From Trichosphaerium sp. ATCC 40318 (lineage: Eukaryota > Protista > Tubulinea): a stretch of 64,000 bases of DNA. How positions within the stretch are numbered: the stretch's first letter is position 1; each line of letters starts with the position of its first letter. The notes under the pieces are model-generated. The model ran no database searches. It worked only from the letters and a program-made list of their open reading frames with translations, and had not been told where the DNA came from. Below, in pieces: positions 2,862-26,257 of the stretch. A program made the position numbers and the translations under genes. Location of the stretch: positions 124,001 through 188,000 of the forward strand of contig JALMLS010000255.1 in NCBI GenBank assembly GCA_038496445.1, in the 5' to 3' direction.

Positions 2862-3539
2862 GCATTCTTGATGGCCGTTACAAAGAATGGGACACATCAG
2901 GTAAATTGCAAGTAGGCACAACAAGAAAAAGTGACAAAATTATTGGTCGCTACAGACAATGGTTTCTAACTGGTAATTTATTTATCAACACAACCTATAA
3001 TGATGAAGGAATCAAACATGGAGAAGAAACAAAATACTACTTAAACGGTTCCCTAAAGGAGAAAAACCAACTTTGAGAATGGGAAAAAAAATGTGCCTTA
3101 TCAAAAATGGCTAACCAAATGGTACTTTGATTAACTCAAGTATGCTTAAGGAAGGTAAGCCTGTAGGCACTTCAAAAGTGAGTAAAGACGAGGGAAAGAC
3201 ATATTACATTACTAATTATGTTGATGGGAAAGAGAATGGTAAAGCGTCAACAGTTGATGATAATGGTATATCCTTTTGTCAGAATGTTTTATGAAAGATG
3301 GTGCACGATGTGGCGTTTATAAGGAGTTTTATCCTGACGGAAGTGTCAAAATGGATGTTGAATATAAAGGTGGTTTAAGACAAGGATTTGAAACACAGTA
3401 TGACGTAAAAGGGAATGTGACAAATCAAGTTGATTTTAAAGACGGTGCTTTAAAATTCAAATCTAAGTTTACTTTTACTCCATCACCAATACAAATTGAT
3501 GAAAAGAGTCAATTTAACTCAGTAGTTGAACTTAGCTAA
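2862..3539 (+). pseudogene. MORN-variant (YwqK-like) repeat protein, frameshifted
   Basis: Repeats 'GRYKEWDTSGKL', 'GRYRQWFLTGNL', 'GEETKYYLNGSL', 'GVYKEFYPDGSV', 'GFETQYDVKGNV'. The frame breaks near ~3065, ~3112 and ~3272 with no splice signals, so this is a pseudogene or sequencing error. Confidence 0.65.
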
Positions 3540-4348
3540 ACCGTTCTTTTTCTTCGAAAAAAAACCTAAAACCAAATATATCAAAACTGATGAGTTCTCA
3601 CTCTCTTGTCTTCTTTCTTTCTATCTTGACCTCTCACACTCTGGTTGTGACTGTTTATCTCTCTTTTACCACCACTGCCCTTTCCATCACGTCACCACAG
3701 AAGCTTATCTTCTTTGTAAACATAACTAATAAACCTGCACGTCTTAAAAAACAATTCTGGTCTTTTTAATATTTATCTTGGTAGTGAAAAGAAAAAAGGA
3801 TGAATTACAACGTCTTGACCACCTAGTGCTGTTGTAAGCCAGGCTTCCCACTCCTATACATCTTGTGATTTGTTGATTGTACAAAGAAACAAAATGAAAC
3901 GTGACTTAGAAATAGCAAAGAGCATCACGTGACATTGTTTCGTTTTAACTCCGAAAAAATACCAAGACTTTGTTGAATATTCTATTCTATCGGTATTGGT
4001 GATTCAACAAGTATTGTGCTTGCGTCCCCTGAAAGCCCAATGCGCGTGACCTCAAACAAAGTGCAAAGGCTATTTTGGTTCTGTGTCAAGCAGCTCAGAA
4101 CATACCGCAGTTGACAAACATTTGAAATGGGTTGGTTTCATGTGAAAGTTTTAGCTAACAATTTGGGGTTCCTTTCAGGAGTTCAATGTTGAACGCAAAA
4201 AAAAATGTACATAGGCCCTTCCATCAAACCTATAAATGCATTGATATAAGGATCCGGAATAAATTTAATGTACGAACAAAGTGCACATGTGCACTTTTTT
4301 TAAAATTCTGTATGAATTCAGGAAGACCAAAAAAACTAAAGTAACTTG

Positions 4349-5497
4349 ATGGCAACACCTCGCTTTATCTTCCTATCCCTTGTATTTTTTGGCATAGTAC
4401 ATGCGTACTGGACTCCCTTTGCTGGAAATGCAGCACCTACCCATATCACTGCAAAGAGATATGACAACATGTTCTTCTCCTCAGGTCCCTTCACAGTTGA
4501 ATCATGGATAATCCAACCTGGAGACAAATTCATACCGATGGAATGGTTGGGTCATACCCAAGTAGCCTCTTTCACTCTCTTCATCAAACCCGGCCAAAAG
4601 TGGATGCTAGCGTGGTTAGACAGGGACGGTAATTGGAGATATCAAGCAAAAGGCGGACGAACAATTGGAACCTGGTATACGTCTTCTACCGATCAATATG
4701 TTTCAGGAAGCTTCAGAGGAAGACTTGAAAAAGACTTGCTCATTTCAAACCCCGATGGTCGCTATGCTACGTTTCAACTAGACATTACAATAGACAATAA
4801 CAACGGGATGTTTAACTACATCTTCAACTTTGTAACACTCCAGTACGCTTCGAACGCAAATGTTCAAGCCACTGACAAACTCCTCGCTGGCTACTTTGAC
4901 CATACTCTAACACCAAGAAAAGAGTACGTTGTATTGATCAAGTCAACCGGGTACTACGTAATGACGTTTAACACGGTAACAAACAACTGGGATATTCTCT
5001 CGAGCTCAAGCAACGGACAGATATACTGGTGGGTTATTAATCTGTCGAATGACAAGTGCATTGTCGGTGGATTCGAAACACGATCACGTGATCTCCTACT
5101 TTGTATTAATCCAAATGGATGGCATCATCTCATGAAATTAGACCCAGCAACAAATACCTTCCAGTTCATTGAAGGCGGCTCAAACGGCAAAGTAGGCACG
5201 TGGACAATCGGTCATCACAATAGATTTCTTGCTGGAAAATTCGACTTGGTTCAACCAGTAGGCGGAATAGATCCACATCACTTGCTCGCAATTGATCCAA
5301 GTGGTAATTCCCAAACACTTAAACTAGTAAATAACCAGTGGACCCAAGTAGCAACGAATAACGGAGATGGTAAGATTGCTGGCTGGCATATCGGTTGGGG
5401 AGATCACTGTGTAAGAGTTGAATCTTATGACGATGACCGCTATAGAATACTAGCACTGAACAATGGCGGTTGGTGGAAAAGTATGCAACTGGCATAA
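4349..5497 (+). CDS. Intronless secreted beta-propeller-like protein (FG-GAP/VCBS-like repeats)
   Basis: 382-aa ORF with signal peptide (MATPRFIFLSLVFFGIVHA). Repeats of the form G-x-(I/V)-G-x-W...(A/S/V)G-x-F...LL-x-I-(N/D)-P-x-G. AATAAA follows the stop. Confidence 0.8.
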   Translation: MATPRFIFLSLVFFGIVHAYWTPFAGNAAPTHITAKRYDNMFFSSGPFTVESWIIQPGDKFIPMEWLGHTQVASFTLFIKPGQKWMLAWLDRDGNWRYQAKGGRTIGTWYTSSTDQYVSGSFRGRLEKDLLISNPDGRYATFQLDITIDNNNGMFNYIFNFVTLQYASNANVQATDKLLAGYFDHTLTPRKEYVVLIKSTGYYVMTFNTVTNNWDILSSSSNGQIYWWVINLSNDKCIVGGFETRSRDLLLCINPNGWHHLMKLDPATNTFQFIEGGSNGKVGTWTIGHHNRFLAGKFDLVQPVGGIDPHHLLAIDPSGNSQTLKLVNNQWTQVATNNGDGKIAGWHIGWGDHCVRVESYDDDRYRILALNNGGWWKSMQLA

Positions 5498-21443: not shown

Positions 21444-24400
21444 CTAAATTACAAGGGTACTCTTTGCTATCAAGTCTGTTACGATTGCATCCAGCTTTTT
21501 CTCTATGCGAAGCAAATTTTTCAGCGTCAATTCTTTTGTTACAGCCCTTGAGGAAGTTAAAAACGAAAGCACTACTAAAAGTAAAAATAAAAAATATGTA
21601 CCTTTGTGCTTTCTTTGCTAGTAGGCTCCACATATCCTCAAACTGCGTAAAATGCTTTTTCAAATATGCAATCACAAACAGAGTTGTTAATAAATGCACA
21701 TGAACAACATCAATCCTTGCAGAATTAAGTCCTACCGTCAATCTCTTTTTGTCAAGTTTAAGCAGTGTTTCGAATTCTTTGCTAACAACAAAAAACCCTA
21801 GGTACCCTTTGTAAGAACAAGATGACATTACAGTTCTCTACCTGACGCGTTTTGAAGGTTGCATATAGCACTGACTAACTCAAGTCGTGTTGTAGGGGTA
21901 GGAGTATTTGCAATGGAGCTACGACTGAAAGAACTAGAGCTAGGTGAAGAGCTTTGTTGGCTGCCAACTGGAGATGGATTCCAAAACCATGACACTACAC
22001 GCGATAGTATACCTCTTCTCTGGTACTCATGAGCTGCTTTTAACTCCGTAACAGCACTCGCAACTTTACAGTTTGAGCAATCAATATCAGCTTCTATTCT
22101 ATCTATCTGTGATCCTTGCGCAACTACCACACAATTGATCTAGTACAGGTTACAAAAAACACTTTTTTTTTTTTTGTTTGTGTTCCAGTACGTCGTTAAA
22201 GATTTCGTTTATCTCCTTTACTTGCATTTCTATATTGGCAATGACTATGTTTCGTTGCTTGATTGTATCTTCTGAATTAGAATAAACGTCTTGTTGTGAA
22301 ACACCCTTTTTTGTAATTTCGTTAGTTTCAAAGAAGGAACTATTGTCAGGCATTTTCGAAACGTAATATCTACACAAGTACCTCTGTTATGGTCTTCATT
22401 TCTGCTTGGGCCTTTACTTGTTCTCTTTTCTCTATTACAACAAGTGAAGTACTTTTTGTTACTAAGTTCCATCTAGAAATCGGTTAAAAACATCCAAACT
22501 ATCATGTGATTTTAAAAGAAAAAACGTGCTTTTTAGCAAGCTCGATTACAACATCCTCGTCTTCTGTTTTGTTTATATATTGAATAGCTGATAACCTATG
22601 TATACTAGATCCTTTAATTGTAACATTATCTAATGCCTAGAGACAACAGAAAGTTAAAACAACGAGAAATGTGTTAAGTGAAATAACATCAAACTTGCCT
22701 TAACTTCAAATCTCCATGGCTTGTTTGCAACTGTTGCCGTTATCTTAATACTTTGATTGTTTTCACCTTCTTTTATAGTGTTATAGGATACTATACGCTC
22801 TCCATGGAATAATACTGGATACAACTGTTTCTTCCCACCCCAGTTAATCATGACATCTTTGAGTGTTGGTTTAAGTGCATCGCTCATTTGTCTCATAACT
22901 TTTGAACTTAAATTCATGTCATTCTTTGCTAATTCTACTCTTCCTCTTCCAATACTACCCATTTTCTTGAGTAAATCAACACTCGCTTCTGCGCCAATAC
23001 CAAACGGAAAAACACGTGTTGACGTTCCGATATTTGACTTCAAAGTGGAAATAATCTGAGAACGAAAAAAAAAGAATTAAAACTAGTTCACTTGAAACGA
23101 AAGAAAAGCCATCCACGTGACTTTGTAATATTTGAACGTACTTCTTTTTCATTTGAATCCTCTCCATCAGTCAAGAAAAAAATTTGTCTAGGAACACTAG
23201 GATCTGACTTTTGTTTCAAAATGTGGTTAAGTGGTTTTAGAATATCAGTCCCACCAAAACTCTATTGACGCACTTGAGTACTGAATAATCAAAATAAAAA
23301 GACACTTACGGCATTCATTGATTCCACGTGATCTTTAGCTTTTTTAAAGCTGTCTTCTGAATAAGGAACACTCGAGTTAAATAATGAACTAAAGTCTGTG
23401 CCGAACGAGACAATATTGAATAATGCTGTTTCTGGAAGTGCACGTAGAAATAATTGTAGAGCACATTTTGCGCTTTTCATCCTCGATCCAGACATCGAAC
23501 CGCTCCTATAAGAAACGAAAAAAATTAAATATAAGCTTATGAGGACATCAAACAAAAAGTAAACTAAAAAAAAAGTGATTTGTCTTAAATCGTCGTTTCT
23601 CGTTTCTTTGAAAACCGCTGATTGAGGGTACCTGTCTACAACAAATATGATCTCACATGTATCTGCTATTTCAGTGTCTTCAATATGAGGGTAGAAAGAA
23701 AGCATAGCTACACGATTCTTATCTATAGGTGACTCTTCAAAAACAAGAGAAGGCTCATGCATTTTTTCTGTTCGAAAGAAAATATTCAACTGTCTATTGT
23801 GAAGGTCTTGTCCATTTAAATGTAACGTTTTCTAAAGAACTCAAGTATCAGCATGTCATGACTACCAGATATTACGTACTTTATCGTTTTGGATATCAAG
23901 TTTATCATGAGAGTTGCTTTCAATAGCGATAATTGGATGTGAAGTAGTAAAGGTTACTGTGACATTTGATTCTTTTGTGGATGGAATCCTTGACGTTATT
24001 GGTAAAATAAACTCAACCCAGTTAGAAGCAGATAATAGTTCTTGAACATAAACAATCTTAAGGAGAACCCAAGTAAGTACAAACATCACAACATAGAAAA
24101 AAAAAAAACACAACGAAAAACTTTACACTTACAGTCACTTCACACTTATCCTTTGGTTGCAAATTACCGACATTTAACCTCATTCCTGTATCCGATATTT
24201 TTTCAGCAAGATAAGCACTATTTCCGCTAGCGATAGCATCATCATAATCTACAATAAAATCACGTGATCAACTTTTTTTTTTTCATAAAACAATAAAGAT
24301 GCCTTTGCAACAATAGTACTGTTATTTAGAGTTTACCTTCAGCAGCTTCATTTTTTTCCTTGCAAACACCAATAAAAGTTTTTCCATCTCGCTTAACCTC

Positions 24401-24686
24401 AAAATAGTATAAGTGAGCTCGAGGAATGTCAAAGTTGAACCTAATCGCATGTTTAACCAAATAAAGCGCCTTGATGTTAACAGTACAAGACGTACATCAC
24501 TTCAGTAGGATTATCAGAGTTGTTTGATAAAGAAAAAGTTGTTTTAACGTTGGCAGTCCAATTTGTTACTTCAGCGTTGATAGAAACGTTTTGCATTGGT
24601 AAAGGACGTCGAGATGAGGAAGAAACGCCAAACTGGCATGGTTCAGTGCCATTTAACTCTGGAATGCGTTGAATACGCCCTGTCAT
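21444..24686 (-). CDS. VWA5A-like protein (VIT + vWA domains) with internal Qa-SNARE motif
   Basis: VIT region 'NVSINAEV..FSLSNNSDNPTEV'; MIDAS 'IFVVDRSGSMSG'; 'FNIVSFG'; 'FFLTDG'; 'VFPFGIG'. SNARE motif at ~22015-22265. C-terminal 'LQNASG', 'WSLLAKKAQ'. Confidence 0.88.
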
Positions 24687-24929: not shown

Positions 24930-26257
24930 CTACTTTATTTCCTCTACAATGATAACAACATTTTCTAGTTCTGCTTCTTCTATTGTCTGGTTTTCATTAA
25001 TTTCCTTTGAAGGTACACCAGTAAGTAGTTTATATGGACCATCAACCATATCAGCTCTGTACAAAGTTAACAAGGTTCACACATGTGAAAATAAAAAAAA
25101 CATACTCATCAATAAATTTTCTAATCTCGGACACTTTCTCATCTAGTCTGAACTCGCATGGTAGTGTGAATCCTGAAGTTGGGTTAAAAAATGTGTACAA
25201 CGTGTATTAGTAGGTACCATCTGGGAAACGTAGCGTTAAGCTACTCTTACCATAACTAGGAGGGGTGCTTGTTTTTTTTTCTTCTTCTATCTTTGCTTGT
25301 TCTCTAACCTTCTTAAGTTCCTCTTTATCTGTAACTTCAATCTTTCCTTTCAAGAACTCAGGAAGTTCACCTTGATTATTTGCCAAATGAACAAGTGCCT
25401 AGAAAACACGTGGTAAGTAGAAAAAAAAACAAGAAAAGACACCAACAAAAAATCAAAAAAAAAAAAGCAAAAAACAAGGTGCAAGACTTCGTTGTTTTCA
25501 GGCATCTACTAGGGCGTACCAATGCTGCTGTTAATTTCTTTATAGGACTTAGGTTTTTAATCATTGCATTTGTACACTATTGATAACGTCACAAAGGCAC
25601 AAGATGAACATAAAACTTGGGTTCTTTTTTACCTGTTTTTTTTTATGTGGCAATAAATTTGATAGCAATGATGGCTCGCTTTGCTCACGAATGACCCATA
25701 TAGGTATTTGCTTATCTAATACGCGCAAGCACAGATCATTTGCAAAGTGATTGGATGTCCTAAAAAGGTGTAAAGCGCTGAAAACAGTTTTGTTTCTCAT
25801 AAAACGTCAATTCGATTTTAAAAGCGTTTAAAATCATCCAGAATGGCTAGAATACGCGTCGTGTACCTTGTTGCAATGTTATAACCACTTCCTAGATACT
25901 CAAGTGCTAAATCCTTTATTATTTTCTTTATTTGTTCTCCTGTAACGTTTGTGGTCCCCAATTCAATCGATTCTCTGCGTATTTGGTGTCAGTGTACATT
26001 TATTGATACAATGACGTAGTATTTGTTTTATAATGTCTCTGGAATACCTTAGAACCGCTGGGGCAACGATTTCTTTTGGTGTATGCTTTACAACGCCAAC
26101 ATCTTTGAAATACGTGTGTTCTTCGTCTTAGCGTTAATTCAAGCGATGTAAATACGAATTGTTTAATACCTTTGCCATCTATTTCAACTCCACAATGATA
26201 GCACGACGGCTGAGGTAACTTATAAACGTGAAGCACAACTTGCTTTGTTGCGGCCAT
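24930..26257 (-). CDS. PPPDE/DeSI-type isopeptidase fused to C-terminal UBX-like domain
   Basis: 'VVLHVYKL..YHCGVEIDG', 'YNIATR..SNHFANDLC..IPIW'. C-terminal 'LTLRFPDGFTLPCEFRLDEKVSEIRKFI...YKLLTGVPSKEINENQTIEEAEL'. Confidence 0.75.

Follow-up and report, generated by a model that had tools for sequence, protein, structure and literature searches.

Introduction

SNARE helices are found almost always in dedicated fusion proteins. In the syntaxins, among them the endosomal syntaxins 7, 12, 13 and 16, the helix has a 16-layer motif with a glutamine at the zero layer and a membrane-proximal end made of YQ and basic residues, and it is accompanied by an Habc domain and a transmembrane anchor. Anchor-less SNAREs are represented by Vam7, SNAP-29 and syntaxin 11, and tomosyn and amisyn are soluble proteins with one C-terminal R-type SNARE-like helix, which form fusion-incompetent complexes. 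Proteins of the VWA5A/BCSC-1 type, for their part, are widespread, and their molecular role is poorly defined. We analysed a stretch of 64,000 nucleotides from Trichosphaerium sp. ATCC 40318 (contig JALMLS010000255.1 of assembly GCA_038496445.1, positions 124,001 to 188,000 of the forward strand), hereafter the window, whose own numbering is used throughout. The product of the gene at 24686-21444, on the minus strand, is a VIT-vWA protein of the VWA5A type with an embedded SNARE helix.

This gene shares with the syntaxins the layered motif, the zero-layer glutamine and the YQ-plus-basic end, but it has neither the Habc domain nor the anchor, and its helix lies inside a VIT-vWA protein. The scaffold is like VWA5A/BCSC-1-type proteins (and, for the VIT-vWA pair, like PARP4 and the ITIH heavy chains) in its N-terminal VIT domain, its VWA_3-type vWA domain with a metal ion-dependent adhesion site (MIDAS), its linker, an N-terminus that does not resemble a signal peptide and, apparently, its C-terminal helical region; it differs in that the linker holds a SNARE helix. 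A single anchor-less SNARE helix on an unrelated larger module is also what tomosyn and amisyn have, and this likeness predicts competition or docking rather than fusion. In those two proteins, however, the helix is R-type and C-terminal, whereas here it is Qa-type and internal, and the module is VIT-vWA. A conceptual comparison may be drawn with the bacterial SNARE mimics (the Legionella LegC proteins and Chlamydia IncA) and with the integrated decoys of plant NLRs, where a SNARE-like helix or a piece resembling a host target sits in a non-fusion protein; the present case differs in being a eukaryote's own spliced gene, without a recognised immune signalling domain.

A SNARE motif between a vWA domain and a C-terminal helical region

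The window is eukaryotic, with about 36% G+C and many short introns. The gene was examined by profile, structure and library searches with single exons as queries, by comparison with its closest full paralogue by vWA exon (on C60, 46% identity, same order of segments), and by transcript evidence. The latter consists of contigs, not reads, from two public runs whose RNA nature is a guess: X1, mostly at least 99% alike, and X2, from a related organism, 95-99% alike. The resulting features are as follows.

24686-21444, minus strand: whole gene of about 14 exons, ATG at 24686 and stop codon TAG at 21446-21444 (exon reading)
24686-23883, minus strand: VIT-domain exons, boundaries approximate (PF08487 matches; hydropathy)
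23831-23632, 23505-23310, 23261-~23100 and ~23055-22699, minus strand: vWA-domain exons (PF13768, MIDAS residues, contig joints)
22636-22530, minus strand: exon 9, post-vWA region of VWA5A type (contig joints, sequence; matching segments in the C60 paralogue)
22472-22382, minus strand: exon 10, post-vWA region of VWA5A type (contig joints, sequence; matching segments in the C60 paralogue)
22305-22192, minus strand: SNARE exon A (exon 11), 38 codons, phase 0-0 (joints 22305/22382 and 22139/22192 in runs X1 and X2)
22191-22140, minus strand: intron of 52 nucleotides, GT..AG, splitting the SNARE motif between layers -3 and -2 (spliced out in contigs of both runs)
22139-22014, minus strand: first 42 codons of SNARE exon B (exon 12, 22139-21842), layers -2 to +8 (PF05739, solved structures, Atlas)
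22013-21842, minus strand: remainder of exon 12, in a single open frame with the SNARE half
21797-21602, minus strand: exon 13, C-terminal helical region (joint 21797/21842; comparable C-terminal segment in the C60 paralogue)
21546-21444, minus strand: exon 14, C-terminal helical region and stop codon (joint 21546/21602)

The motif of 66 residues is composed of residues 15-38 of exon A, which follow a lead-in of 14 residues and hold layers -7 to -3 (22263-22192), and of residues 1-42 of exon B, which end in a membrane-proximal YQRR. Counted with a 3-4 spacing from the zero-layer glutamine (codon 22118-22116), layers -7 to +8 are I I V I F I V Q I I I S V A L A. All 16 layers are thus present, with I, L, V, F or M in 12 of the 15 non-zero layers and A, S and A in the other three. 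Shuffles within the exons equal this layer score about 5 times per million (~5e-6), and every shifted register reaches at most 8 of 15. The motif is followed by no membrane anchor (the maximal Kyte-Doolittle mean over 19 residues in exon 12 is 0.53), and the open frame continues through a hydrophilic linker rich in Ser, Thr and Pro into the C-terminal region. Nor is it preceded by an Habc domain: the upstream exons encode VIT and vWA, and no Syntaxin-family Pfam match was found on any exon scanned. By its layers and its frame, the motif is a complete Qa-type (syntaxin-type) SNARE helix, internal and devoid of both anchor and Habc domain.

Beyond the motif, exon 12 comprises a SWF-NPS stretch (22013-21966), the Ser/Thr/Pro-rich linker (21965-21888) and the beginning of the C-terminal region (21887-21842). 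Two variants fall in this part of the exon. One is an in-frame insertion of 3 nucleotides after 21959, in the Ser-rich linker, seen in X1 and X2 and allelic within X1; the other, a Trp-to-Arg change at 21983 in the SWFW stretch, is allelic in X1.

The scaffold around the helix is well recognised by profiles at its N-terminal side. Matches to PF08487 (VIT) at 24447-24596, 24338-24448 and 24127-24249 together span profile positions 1-110, exon 1 giving weak VIT and VIT_2 matches, and the vWA exons score 38.2 bits with PF13768 (VWA_3; cut-off 27). Read directly, the MIDAS (DxSxS, GGT, TDG) is intact, with DRSGS across the 23632/23505 junction, then GGTD, then TDGE. By hydropathy the N-terminus is hydrophilic, with no stretch resembling a signal peptide, and a transmembrane helix was not found in the exons tested, where the 19-residue mean never exceeds 1.53, below the usual transmembrane level; this maximum sits in a C-terminal helix that is also present in the C60 paralogue. 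The C-terminal helical region as a whole, for which Pfam has no model, resembles by eye the C-terminus of the same paralogue, and the sole match of a genome search with exon 13 was the gene itself. A Pfam scan of the exons yielded no known signalling or death domain. In the C60 paralogue, the interval between the post-vWA segment and the C-terminal region is taken up by a charged helix and by sequence of low complexity, with no SNARE motif.

The SNARE exons are part of the mature transcript

In X2, a single contig of 512 bases spans 21858-22139, 22192-22304 and 22381-22472, plus 22 bases into exon 9. Contigs of X1 join 22003-22139 to 22192-22303, and 21601-21796 to 21841-21950. Between the two runs, spliced contigs connect exons 9-10-11-12 and 12-13-14, and further joints are found on the vWA side (23831/23880, 23505/23632, 23261/23310 and 22636/22699, the ambiguous cuts being refined afterwards). 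In all, nine introns are exactly removed, all in minus-strand orientation, seven of them GT..AG and two with a GC donor (22698-22637 and 22529-22473, with GCAAGT and GCACGT, after placing ambiguous cuts). It is hard to explain such exact removal of nine introns other than by the runs being RNA. By the lengths and phases of the exons, the vWA side, both SNARE exons and the C-terminal exons share a single reading frame; as spliced contigs join the SNARE exons in frame to both sides, the motif is in the mature mRNA. The gene is expressed and its SNARE exons are included in the mRNA, a minor skipping isoform being compatible with the contigs. Exon boundaries upstream of 23880 come without RNA verification and are approximate, since thousands of splice paths were enumerated across the 5' VIT exons.

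Within the motif, 8 differences are listed between X2 and the gene, of which 5 are synonymous and 3 are replacements, all of them off the layer positions. These differences are consistent with purifying selection on the motif, in what is a very small sample.

An earlier note on this DNA, made from the letters of the window, had proposed a complete Qa-SNARE motif in frame inside a VIT-vWA protein, and the 16 layers and the spliced contigs bear it out. The peptide it gave corresponds exactly to the two SNARE exons, with the 52-nucleotide intron correctly taken out. Its statement that no transmembrane helix follows the motif agrees with the hydropathy of exon 12, and the low-complexity linker that it regarded as usual at this position is what the C60 paralogue has. 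The case that it had named as fatal, namely SNARE exons left out of the mRNA or derived from another transcript, is not what the contigs show, as they join exons 11 and 12 to both flanks. Its further idea, that the protein is a soluble decoy or adaptor coupling the vWA module to endosomal or phagosomal fusion, stands as a conjecture.

Similarity of the motif to syntaxins

Searched against solved structures, exon B matched syntaxin 1A or syntaxin 13 in 14 of 15 cases, in register and with E values of 0.13-0.8, the alignments starting at the -1 layer and ending at YQ. Scores of this size were calibrated on the half-motif exons of two canonical syntaxins of the same genome, which reached 18.6 and 27.6 bits where exon B reached 15.7 (same best anchor-less chain). 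The weak scores of the motif thus reflect its length and not a want of SNARE character. The clusters of the ESM Atlas nearest to exon B are SNARE clusters, with scores that count as leads only. Together these matches suggest, weakly, that the C-terminal half of the motif is syntaxin-like. As for exon A, its best match among the SNARE loci of the genome is the N-terminal half of a syntaxin motif on C7 (33% identity over 36 residues, in register, with the same IF-D end).

The two best matches of the motif within the genome, on C7 and C69, we take from their signatures to be Stx16-like and Stx7/12-like, respectively. The earlier note had assigned the motif to a syntaxin 7/12/16-like subtype. This assignment is not supported, as the identity to C7 and C69 is only about 30% and syntaxin 1A and syntaxin 13 are level among the solved structures. 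Recent copying at the DNA level from the organism's own syntaxin genes, of which shared intron positions would be a sign, finds no support, the introns of the two canonical syntaxin genes examined lying at other positions. Taken with the identity of about 30%, this mismatch of introns indicates that the SNARE cassette is either old or fast-evolving.

The joining of a Qa-SNARE helix to a VWA5A-type scaffold is, by the searches made, a new domain combination, the database search being of low power. A search of exon B against 1.84 billion representative proteins gave one spurious match, to an fn3 protein through the Ser-rich linker; with a library this large, half a SNARE motif is too little to become significant, and this blank is of little weight. 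A word search with exon B, covering proteins of 55-173 residues only, gave no match, and nothing relevant was found in a literature search (VWA5A or VWA with SNARE, DUF2135, syntaxin architecture in Amoebozoa).

Other VIT-vWA genes with a SNARE helix

The genome (70 Mb in 642 contigs) has more than 30 VIT loci. We mapped matches of three SNARE-family profiles against VIT matches on the same strand and within 5 kb, and checked the neighbours by profile matches and by reading, without RNA. Four loci came out, the present gene and those on C19, C28 and C62, for a chance expectation of about 0.085 by our own arithmetic from about 36 SNARE-type loci and 33 VIT loci. The other three are:

L016 (C19:174000-182000), frame L016:2786-3640, minus strand: Qb helix, V-SNARE_C at 35 bits, over the cut-off
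L021 (C28:88500-97500), minus strand: R helix, VAMP-like, after an acidic frame of 477 residues in a VIT-vWA-TPR gene
L019 (C62:124500-130500), plus strand: R helix with a Ykt6-like longin, directly upstream of VIT and vWA exons

The C19 locus is a VIT-vWA gene of bacterial type, in which a 285-residue frame lies between the VIT/vWA exons and the TPR exons and runs into exons of the Ras/Rab family; further downstream, the same strand carries a hydrophobic frame and exons of TPR and DUF2135-like type. All three loci are like the present gene in that a SNARE helix lacking a normal anchor lies on the same strand within, or adjacent to, a VIT-vWA gene. They differ in that their helices are Qb or R, and in that two of them have a bacterial-type VIT-vWA-TPR-DUF2135 scaffold, whereas the present gene has a Qa helix in a VWA5A-type scaffold. 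With at least four VIT-vWA genes carrying a SNARE helix (Qa here, Qb on C19, R on C28 and C62), the link between scaffold and SNARE helix appears to be recurrent and no one-off accident.

The gene also has a second, truncated copy:

L017 (C114:47000-53000), ~3050-4400, minus strand: truncated gene copy, with VIT exons and both SNARE-like exons kept

The intron that splits the SNARE motif is at the same place in this copy as in the gene. The part of exon 12 that follows the motif is 40% identical over 50 residues, SWF-NPS being the best-kept stretch.

Outside the gene, its upstream neighbour on the same strand (about 24930-25990, minus) shows by eye PPPDE/DeSI-type peptidase-like exons, then a UBX-like domain.

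Discussion

A SNARE helix becomes folded only when it zippers with others into a four-helix bundle, and the most likely state of the embedded helix is for this reason one of pairing with Qb, Qc and R helices, or of being bound by a factor. The reading that we tentatively favour, and which we hold to be possible at not quite even chances, is that of a soluble, fusion-incompetent SNARE-binding handle, which would dock the VIT-vWA module on the SNARE machinery or withhold partners from it. The embedded Qa helix would pair with helices of the Qb, Qc and R types from the cell's own SNAREs; alternatively, it would be bound by factors that recognise syntaxin helices. Since it has no anchor, the helix cannot drive fusion. 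The resulting fusion-incompetent complex would dock the VIT-vWA scaffold onto the SNARE machinery, or it would withhold partners in competition with a real syntaxin, as tomosyn and amisyn do with an R-type helix.

Several points weigh against this reading. With exon B, the SNARE profile PF05739 gives 16.4-16.8 bits (E 0.009, profile positions 2-33), so that the profile check suggested by the earlier note returned a partial match whose score lies below the curated cut-off of 26.8. The profile covers the part from beyond the zero layer into the anchor region, its anchor-proximal third having no counterpart here; because of this starting point, joining both SNARE exons would add little to the score. 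Exon A alone, searched against solved structures, matched no syntaxin and gave only a chance spectrin match. The identity of about 30% to the best syntaxins of the same genome (C7 and C69) means that no cognate SNARE set can be named. No orthologue beyond two closely related organisms was found in the exon-B searches of protein libraries, and the polymorphism sample is tiny. The copy on C114 lacks any vWA exons, a gap of two residues breaks its heptad register and a TAA stop follows; we read it as a decaying partial duplicate. Finally, we list here a complex prediction in which the exon 12 part of the motif, holding layers -2 to +8, was combined with three canonical SNARE helices encoded in this genome, one Qb (SNAP-29-like), one Qc and one R (VAMP-type). 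Its score was 0.33, where the mark is 0.34 and one control gave 0.27, and it speaks neither for nor against binding. The fold predicted for exon B alone has a pLDDT (predicted local distance difference test) of 41 and is uninformative. The Qb partner was taken from a SNAP-29-like frame on L023 (C122:104700-106000, plus strand, 320-904), where two NPF motifs precede a Qb-type SNARE helix.

The main rival to a docking or withholding handle is that the helix is a bait, or integrated decoy, mimicking a host syntaxin for the effector or protease of a pathogen, with the VIT-vWA scaffold reporting or absorbing the attack. VIT-vWA genes of this genome do repeatedly carry pieces of core cell proteins in their linker (SNARE helices of three types, Rab-like exons), and the cassette lies within a low-complexity, presumably flexible linker. 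We nevertheless consider a bait rather unlikely: no known signalling or death domain is encoded by the gene, VIT-vWA proteins are not known to have a signalling role, the helix is only about 30% identical to any of the organism's own syntaxins, less than one would expect of something that mimics a host target, and no paper describing such a system in protists was found. The present data do not separate a bait from a targeting module. A broader proposal, which we judge somewhat less probable still, even with its two variants taken jointly, is a display system in which members of the VIT-vWA family would each present one SNARE-class helix, and others pieces of other core cell proteins. Such a system might serve as surveillance or decoy against the effectors of intracellular pathogens, or the Qa, Qb and R bearers might zipper with each other into a multi-scaffold complex.

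It is also conceivable that the helix is a generic coiled coil, which would let the VIT-vWA protein associate with itself and with no other SNARE. Self-association is possible for isolated syntaxin H3 helices, the heptad pattern is strong, and the charged helix of the C60 paralogue occupies the same place, so that a helical element there may be ancestral. An ordinary coiled coil, however, would have no need of the zero-layer glutamine and the surrounding syntaxin-specific residues, which are kept, and the sister genes have Qb and R helices and not further Qa-like coils, which makes this explanation improbable. Slightly more improbable again is a neutral relic, that is, a fragment of a syntaxin gene captured as exons and without function. 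The degenerate C114 copy, with its lost vWA exons, broken register and stop, would fit such a history, as would the failure to find a distant orthologue. In the full-length gene, by contrast, every layer, the zero-layer glutamine and the frame are intact despite a divergence of about 70% from any syntaxin, the replacements in the related organism miss the layers, and both SNARE exons are spliced in by both organisms. That the SNARE exons stem from another transcript or from a misassembly is hardly credible. Such an artefact would draw on the runs being merely guessed as RNA and on the evidence being contigs and not reads; yet the X2 contig runs through exons 12, 11 and 10 into exon 9, and X1 contigs span exons 11-12 and 12-13, with introns exactly removed. 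The introns flanking the cassette, moreover, measure only 76 nucleotides (before) and 44 nucleotides (after), which leaves no room for the promoter or the Habc exons of another gene.

An anchor-less syntaxin helix in the linker of a VWA5A-type protein offers a testable hypothesis for what this scaffold contacts, namely the fusion machinery, and the sister genes with Qb and R helices strengthen this hypothesis. The gene would encode a naturally occurring soluble competitor or adaptor of Qa type. Amoeba-like protists naturally harbour intracellular bacteria and giant viruses; if the display of core cell protein pieces by the VIT-vWA family were true, it would be a new kind of cell-autonomous sensing in these organisms, and either variant of it, surveillance or multi-scaffold assembly, would put SNARE helices to an as yet undescribed use, apart from membrane fusion.

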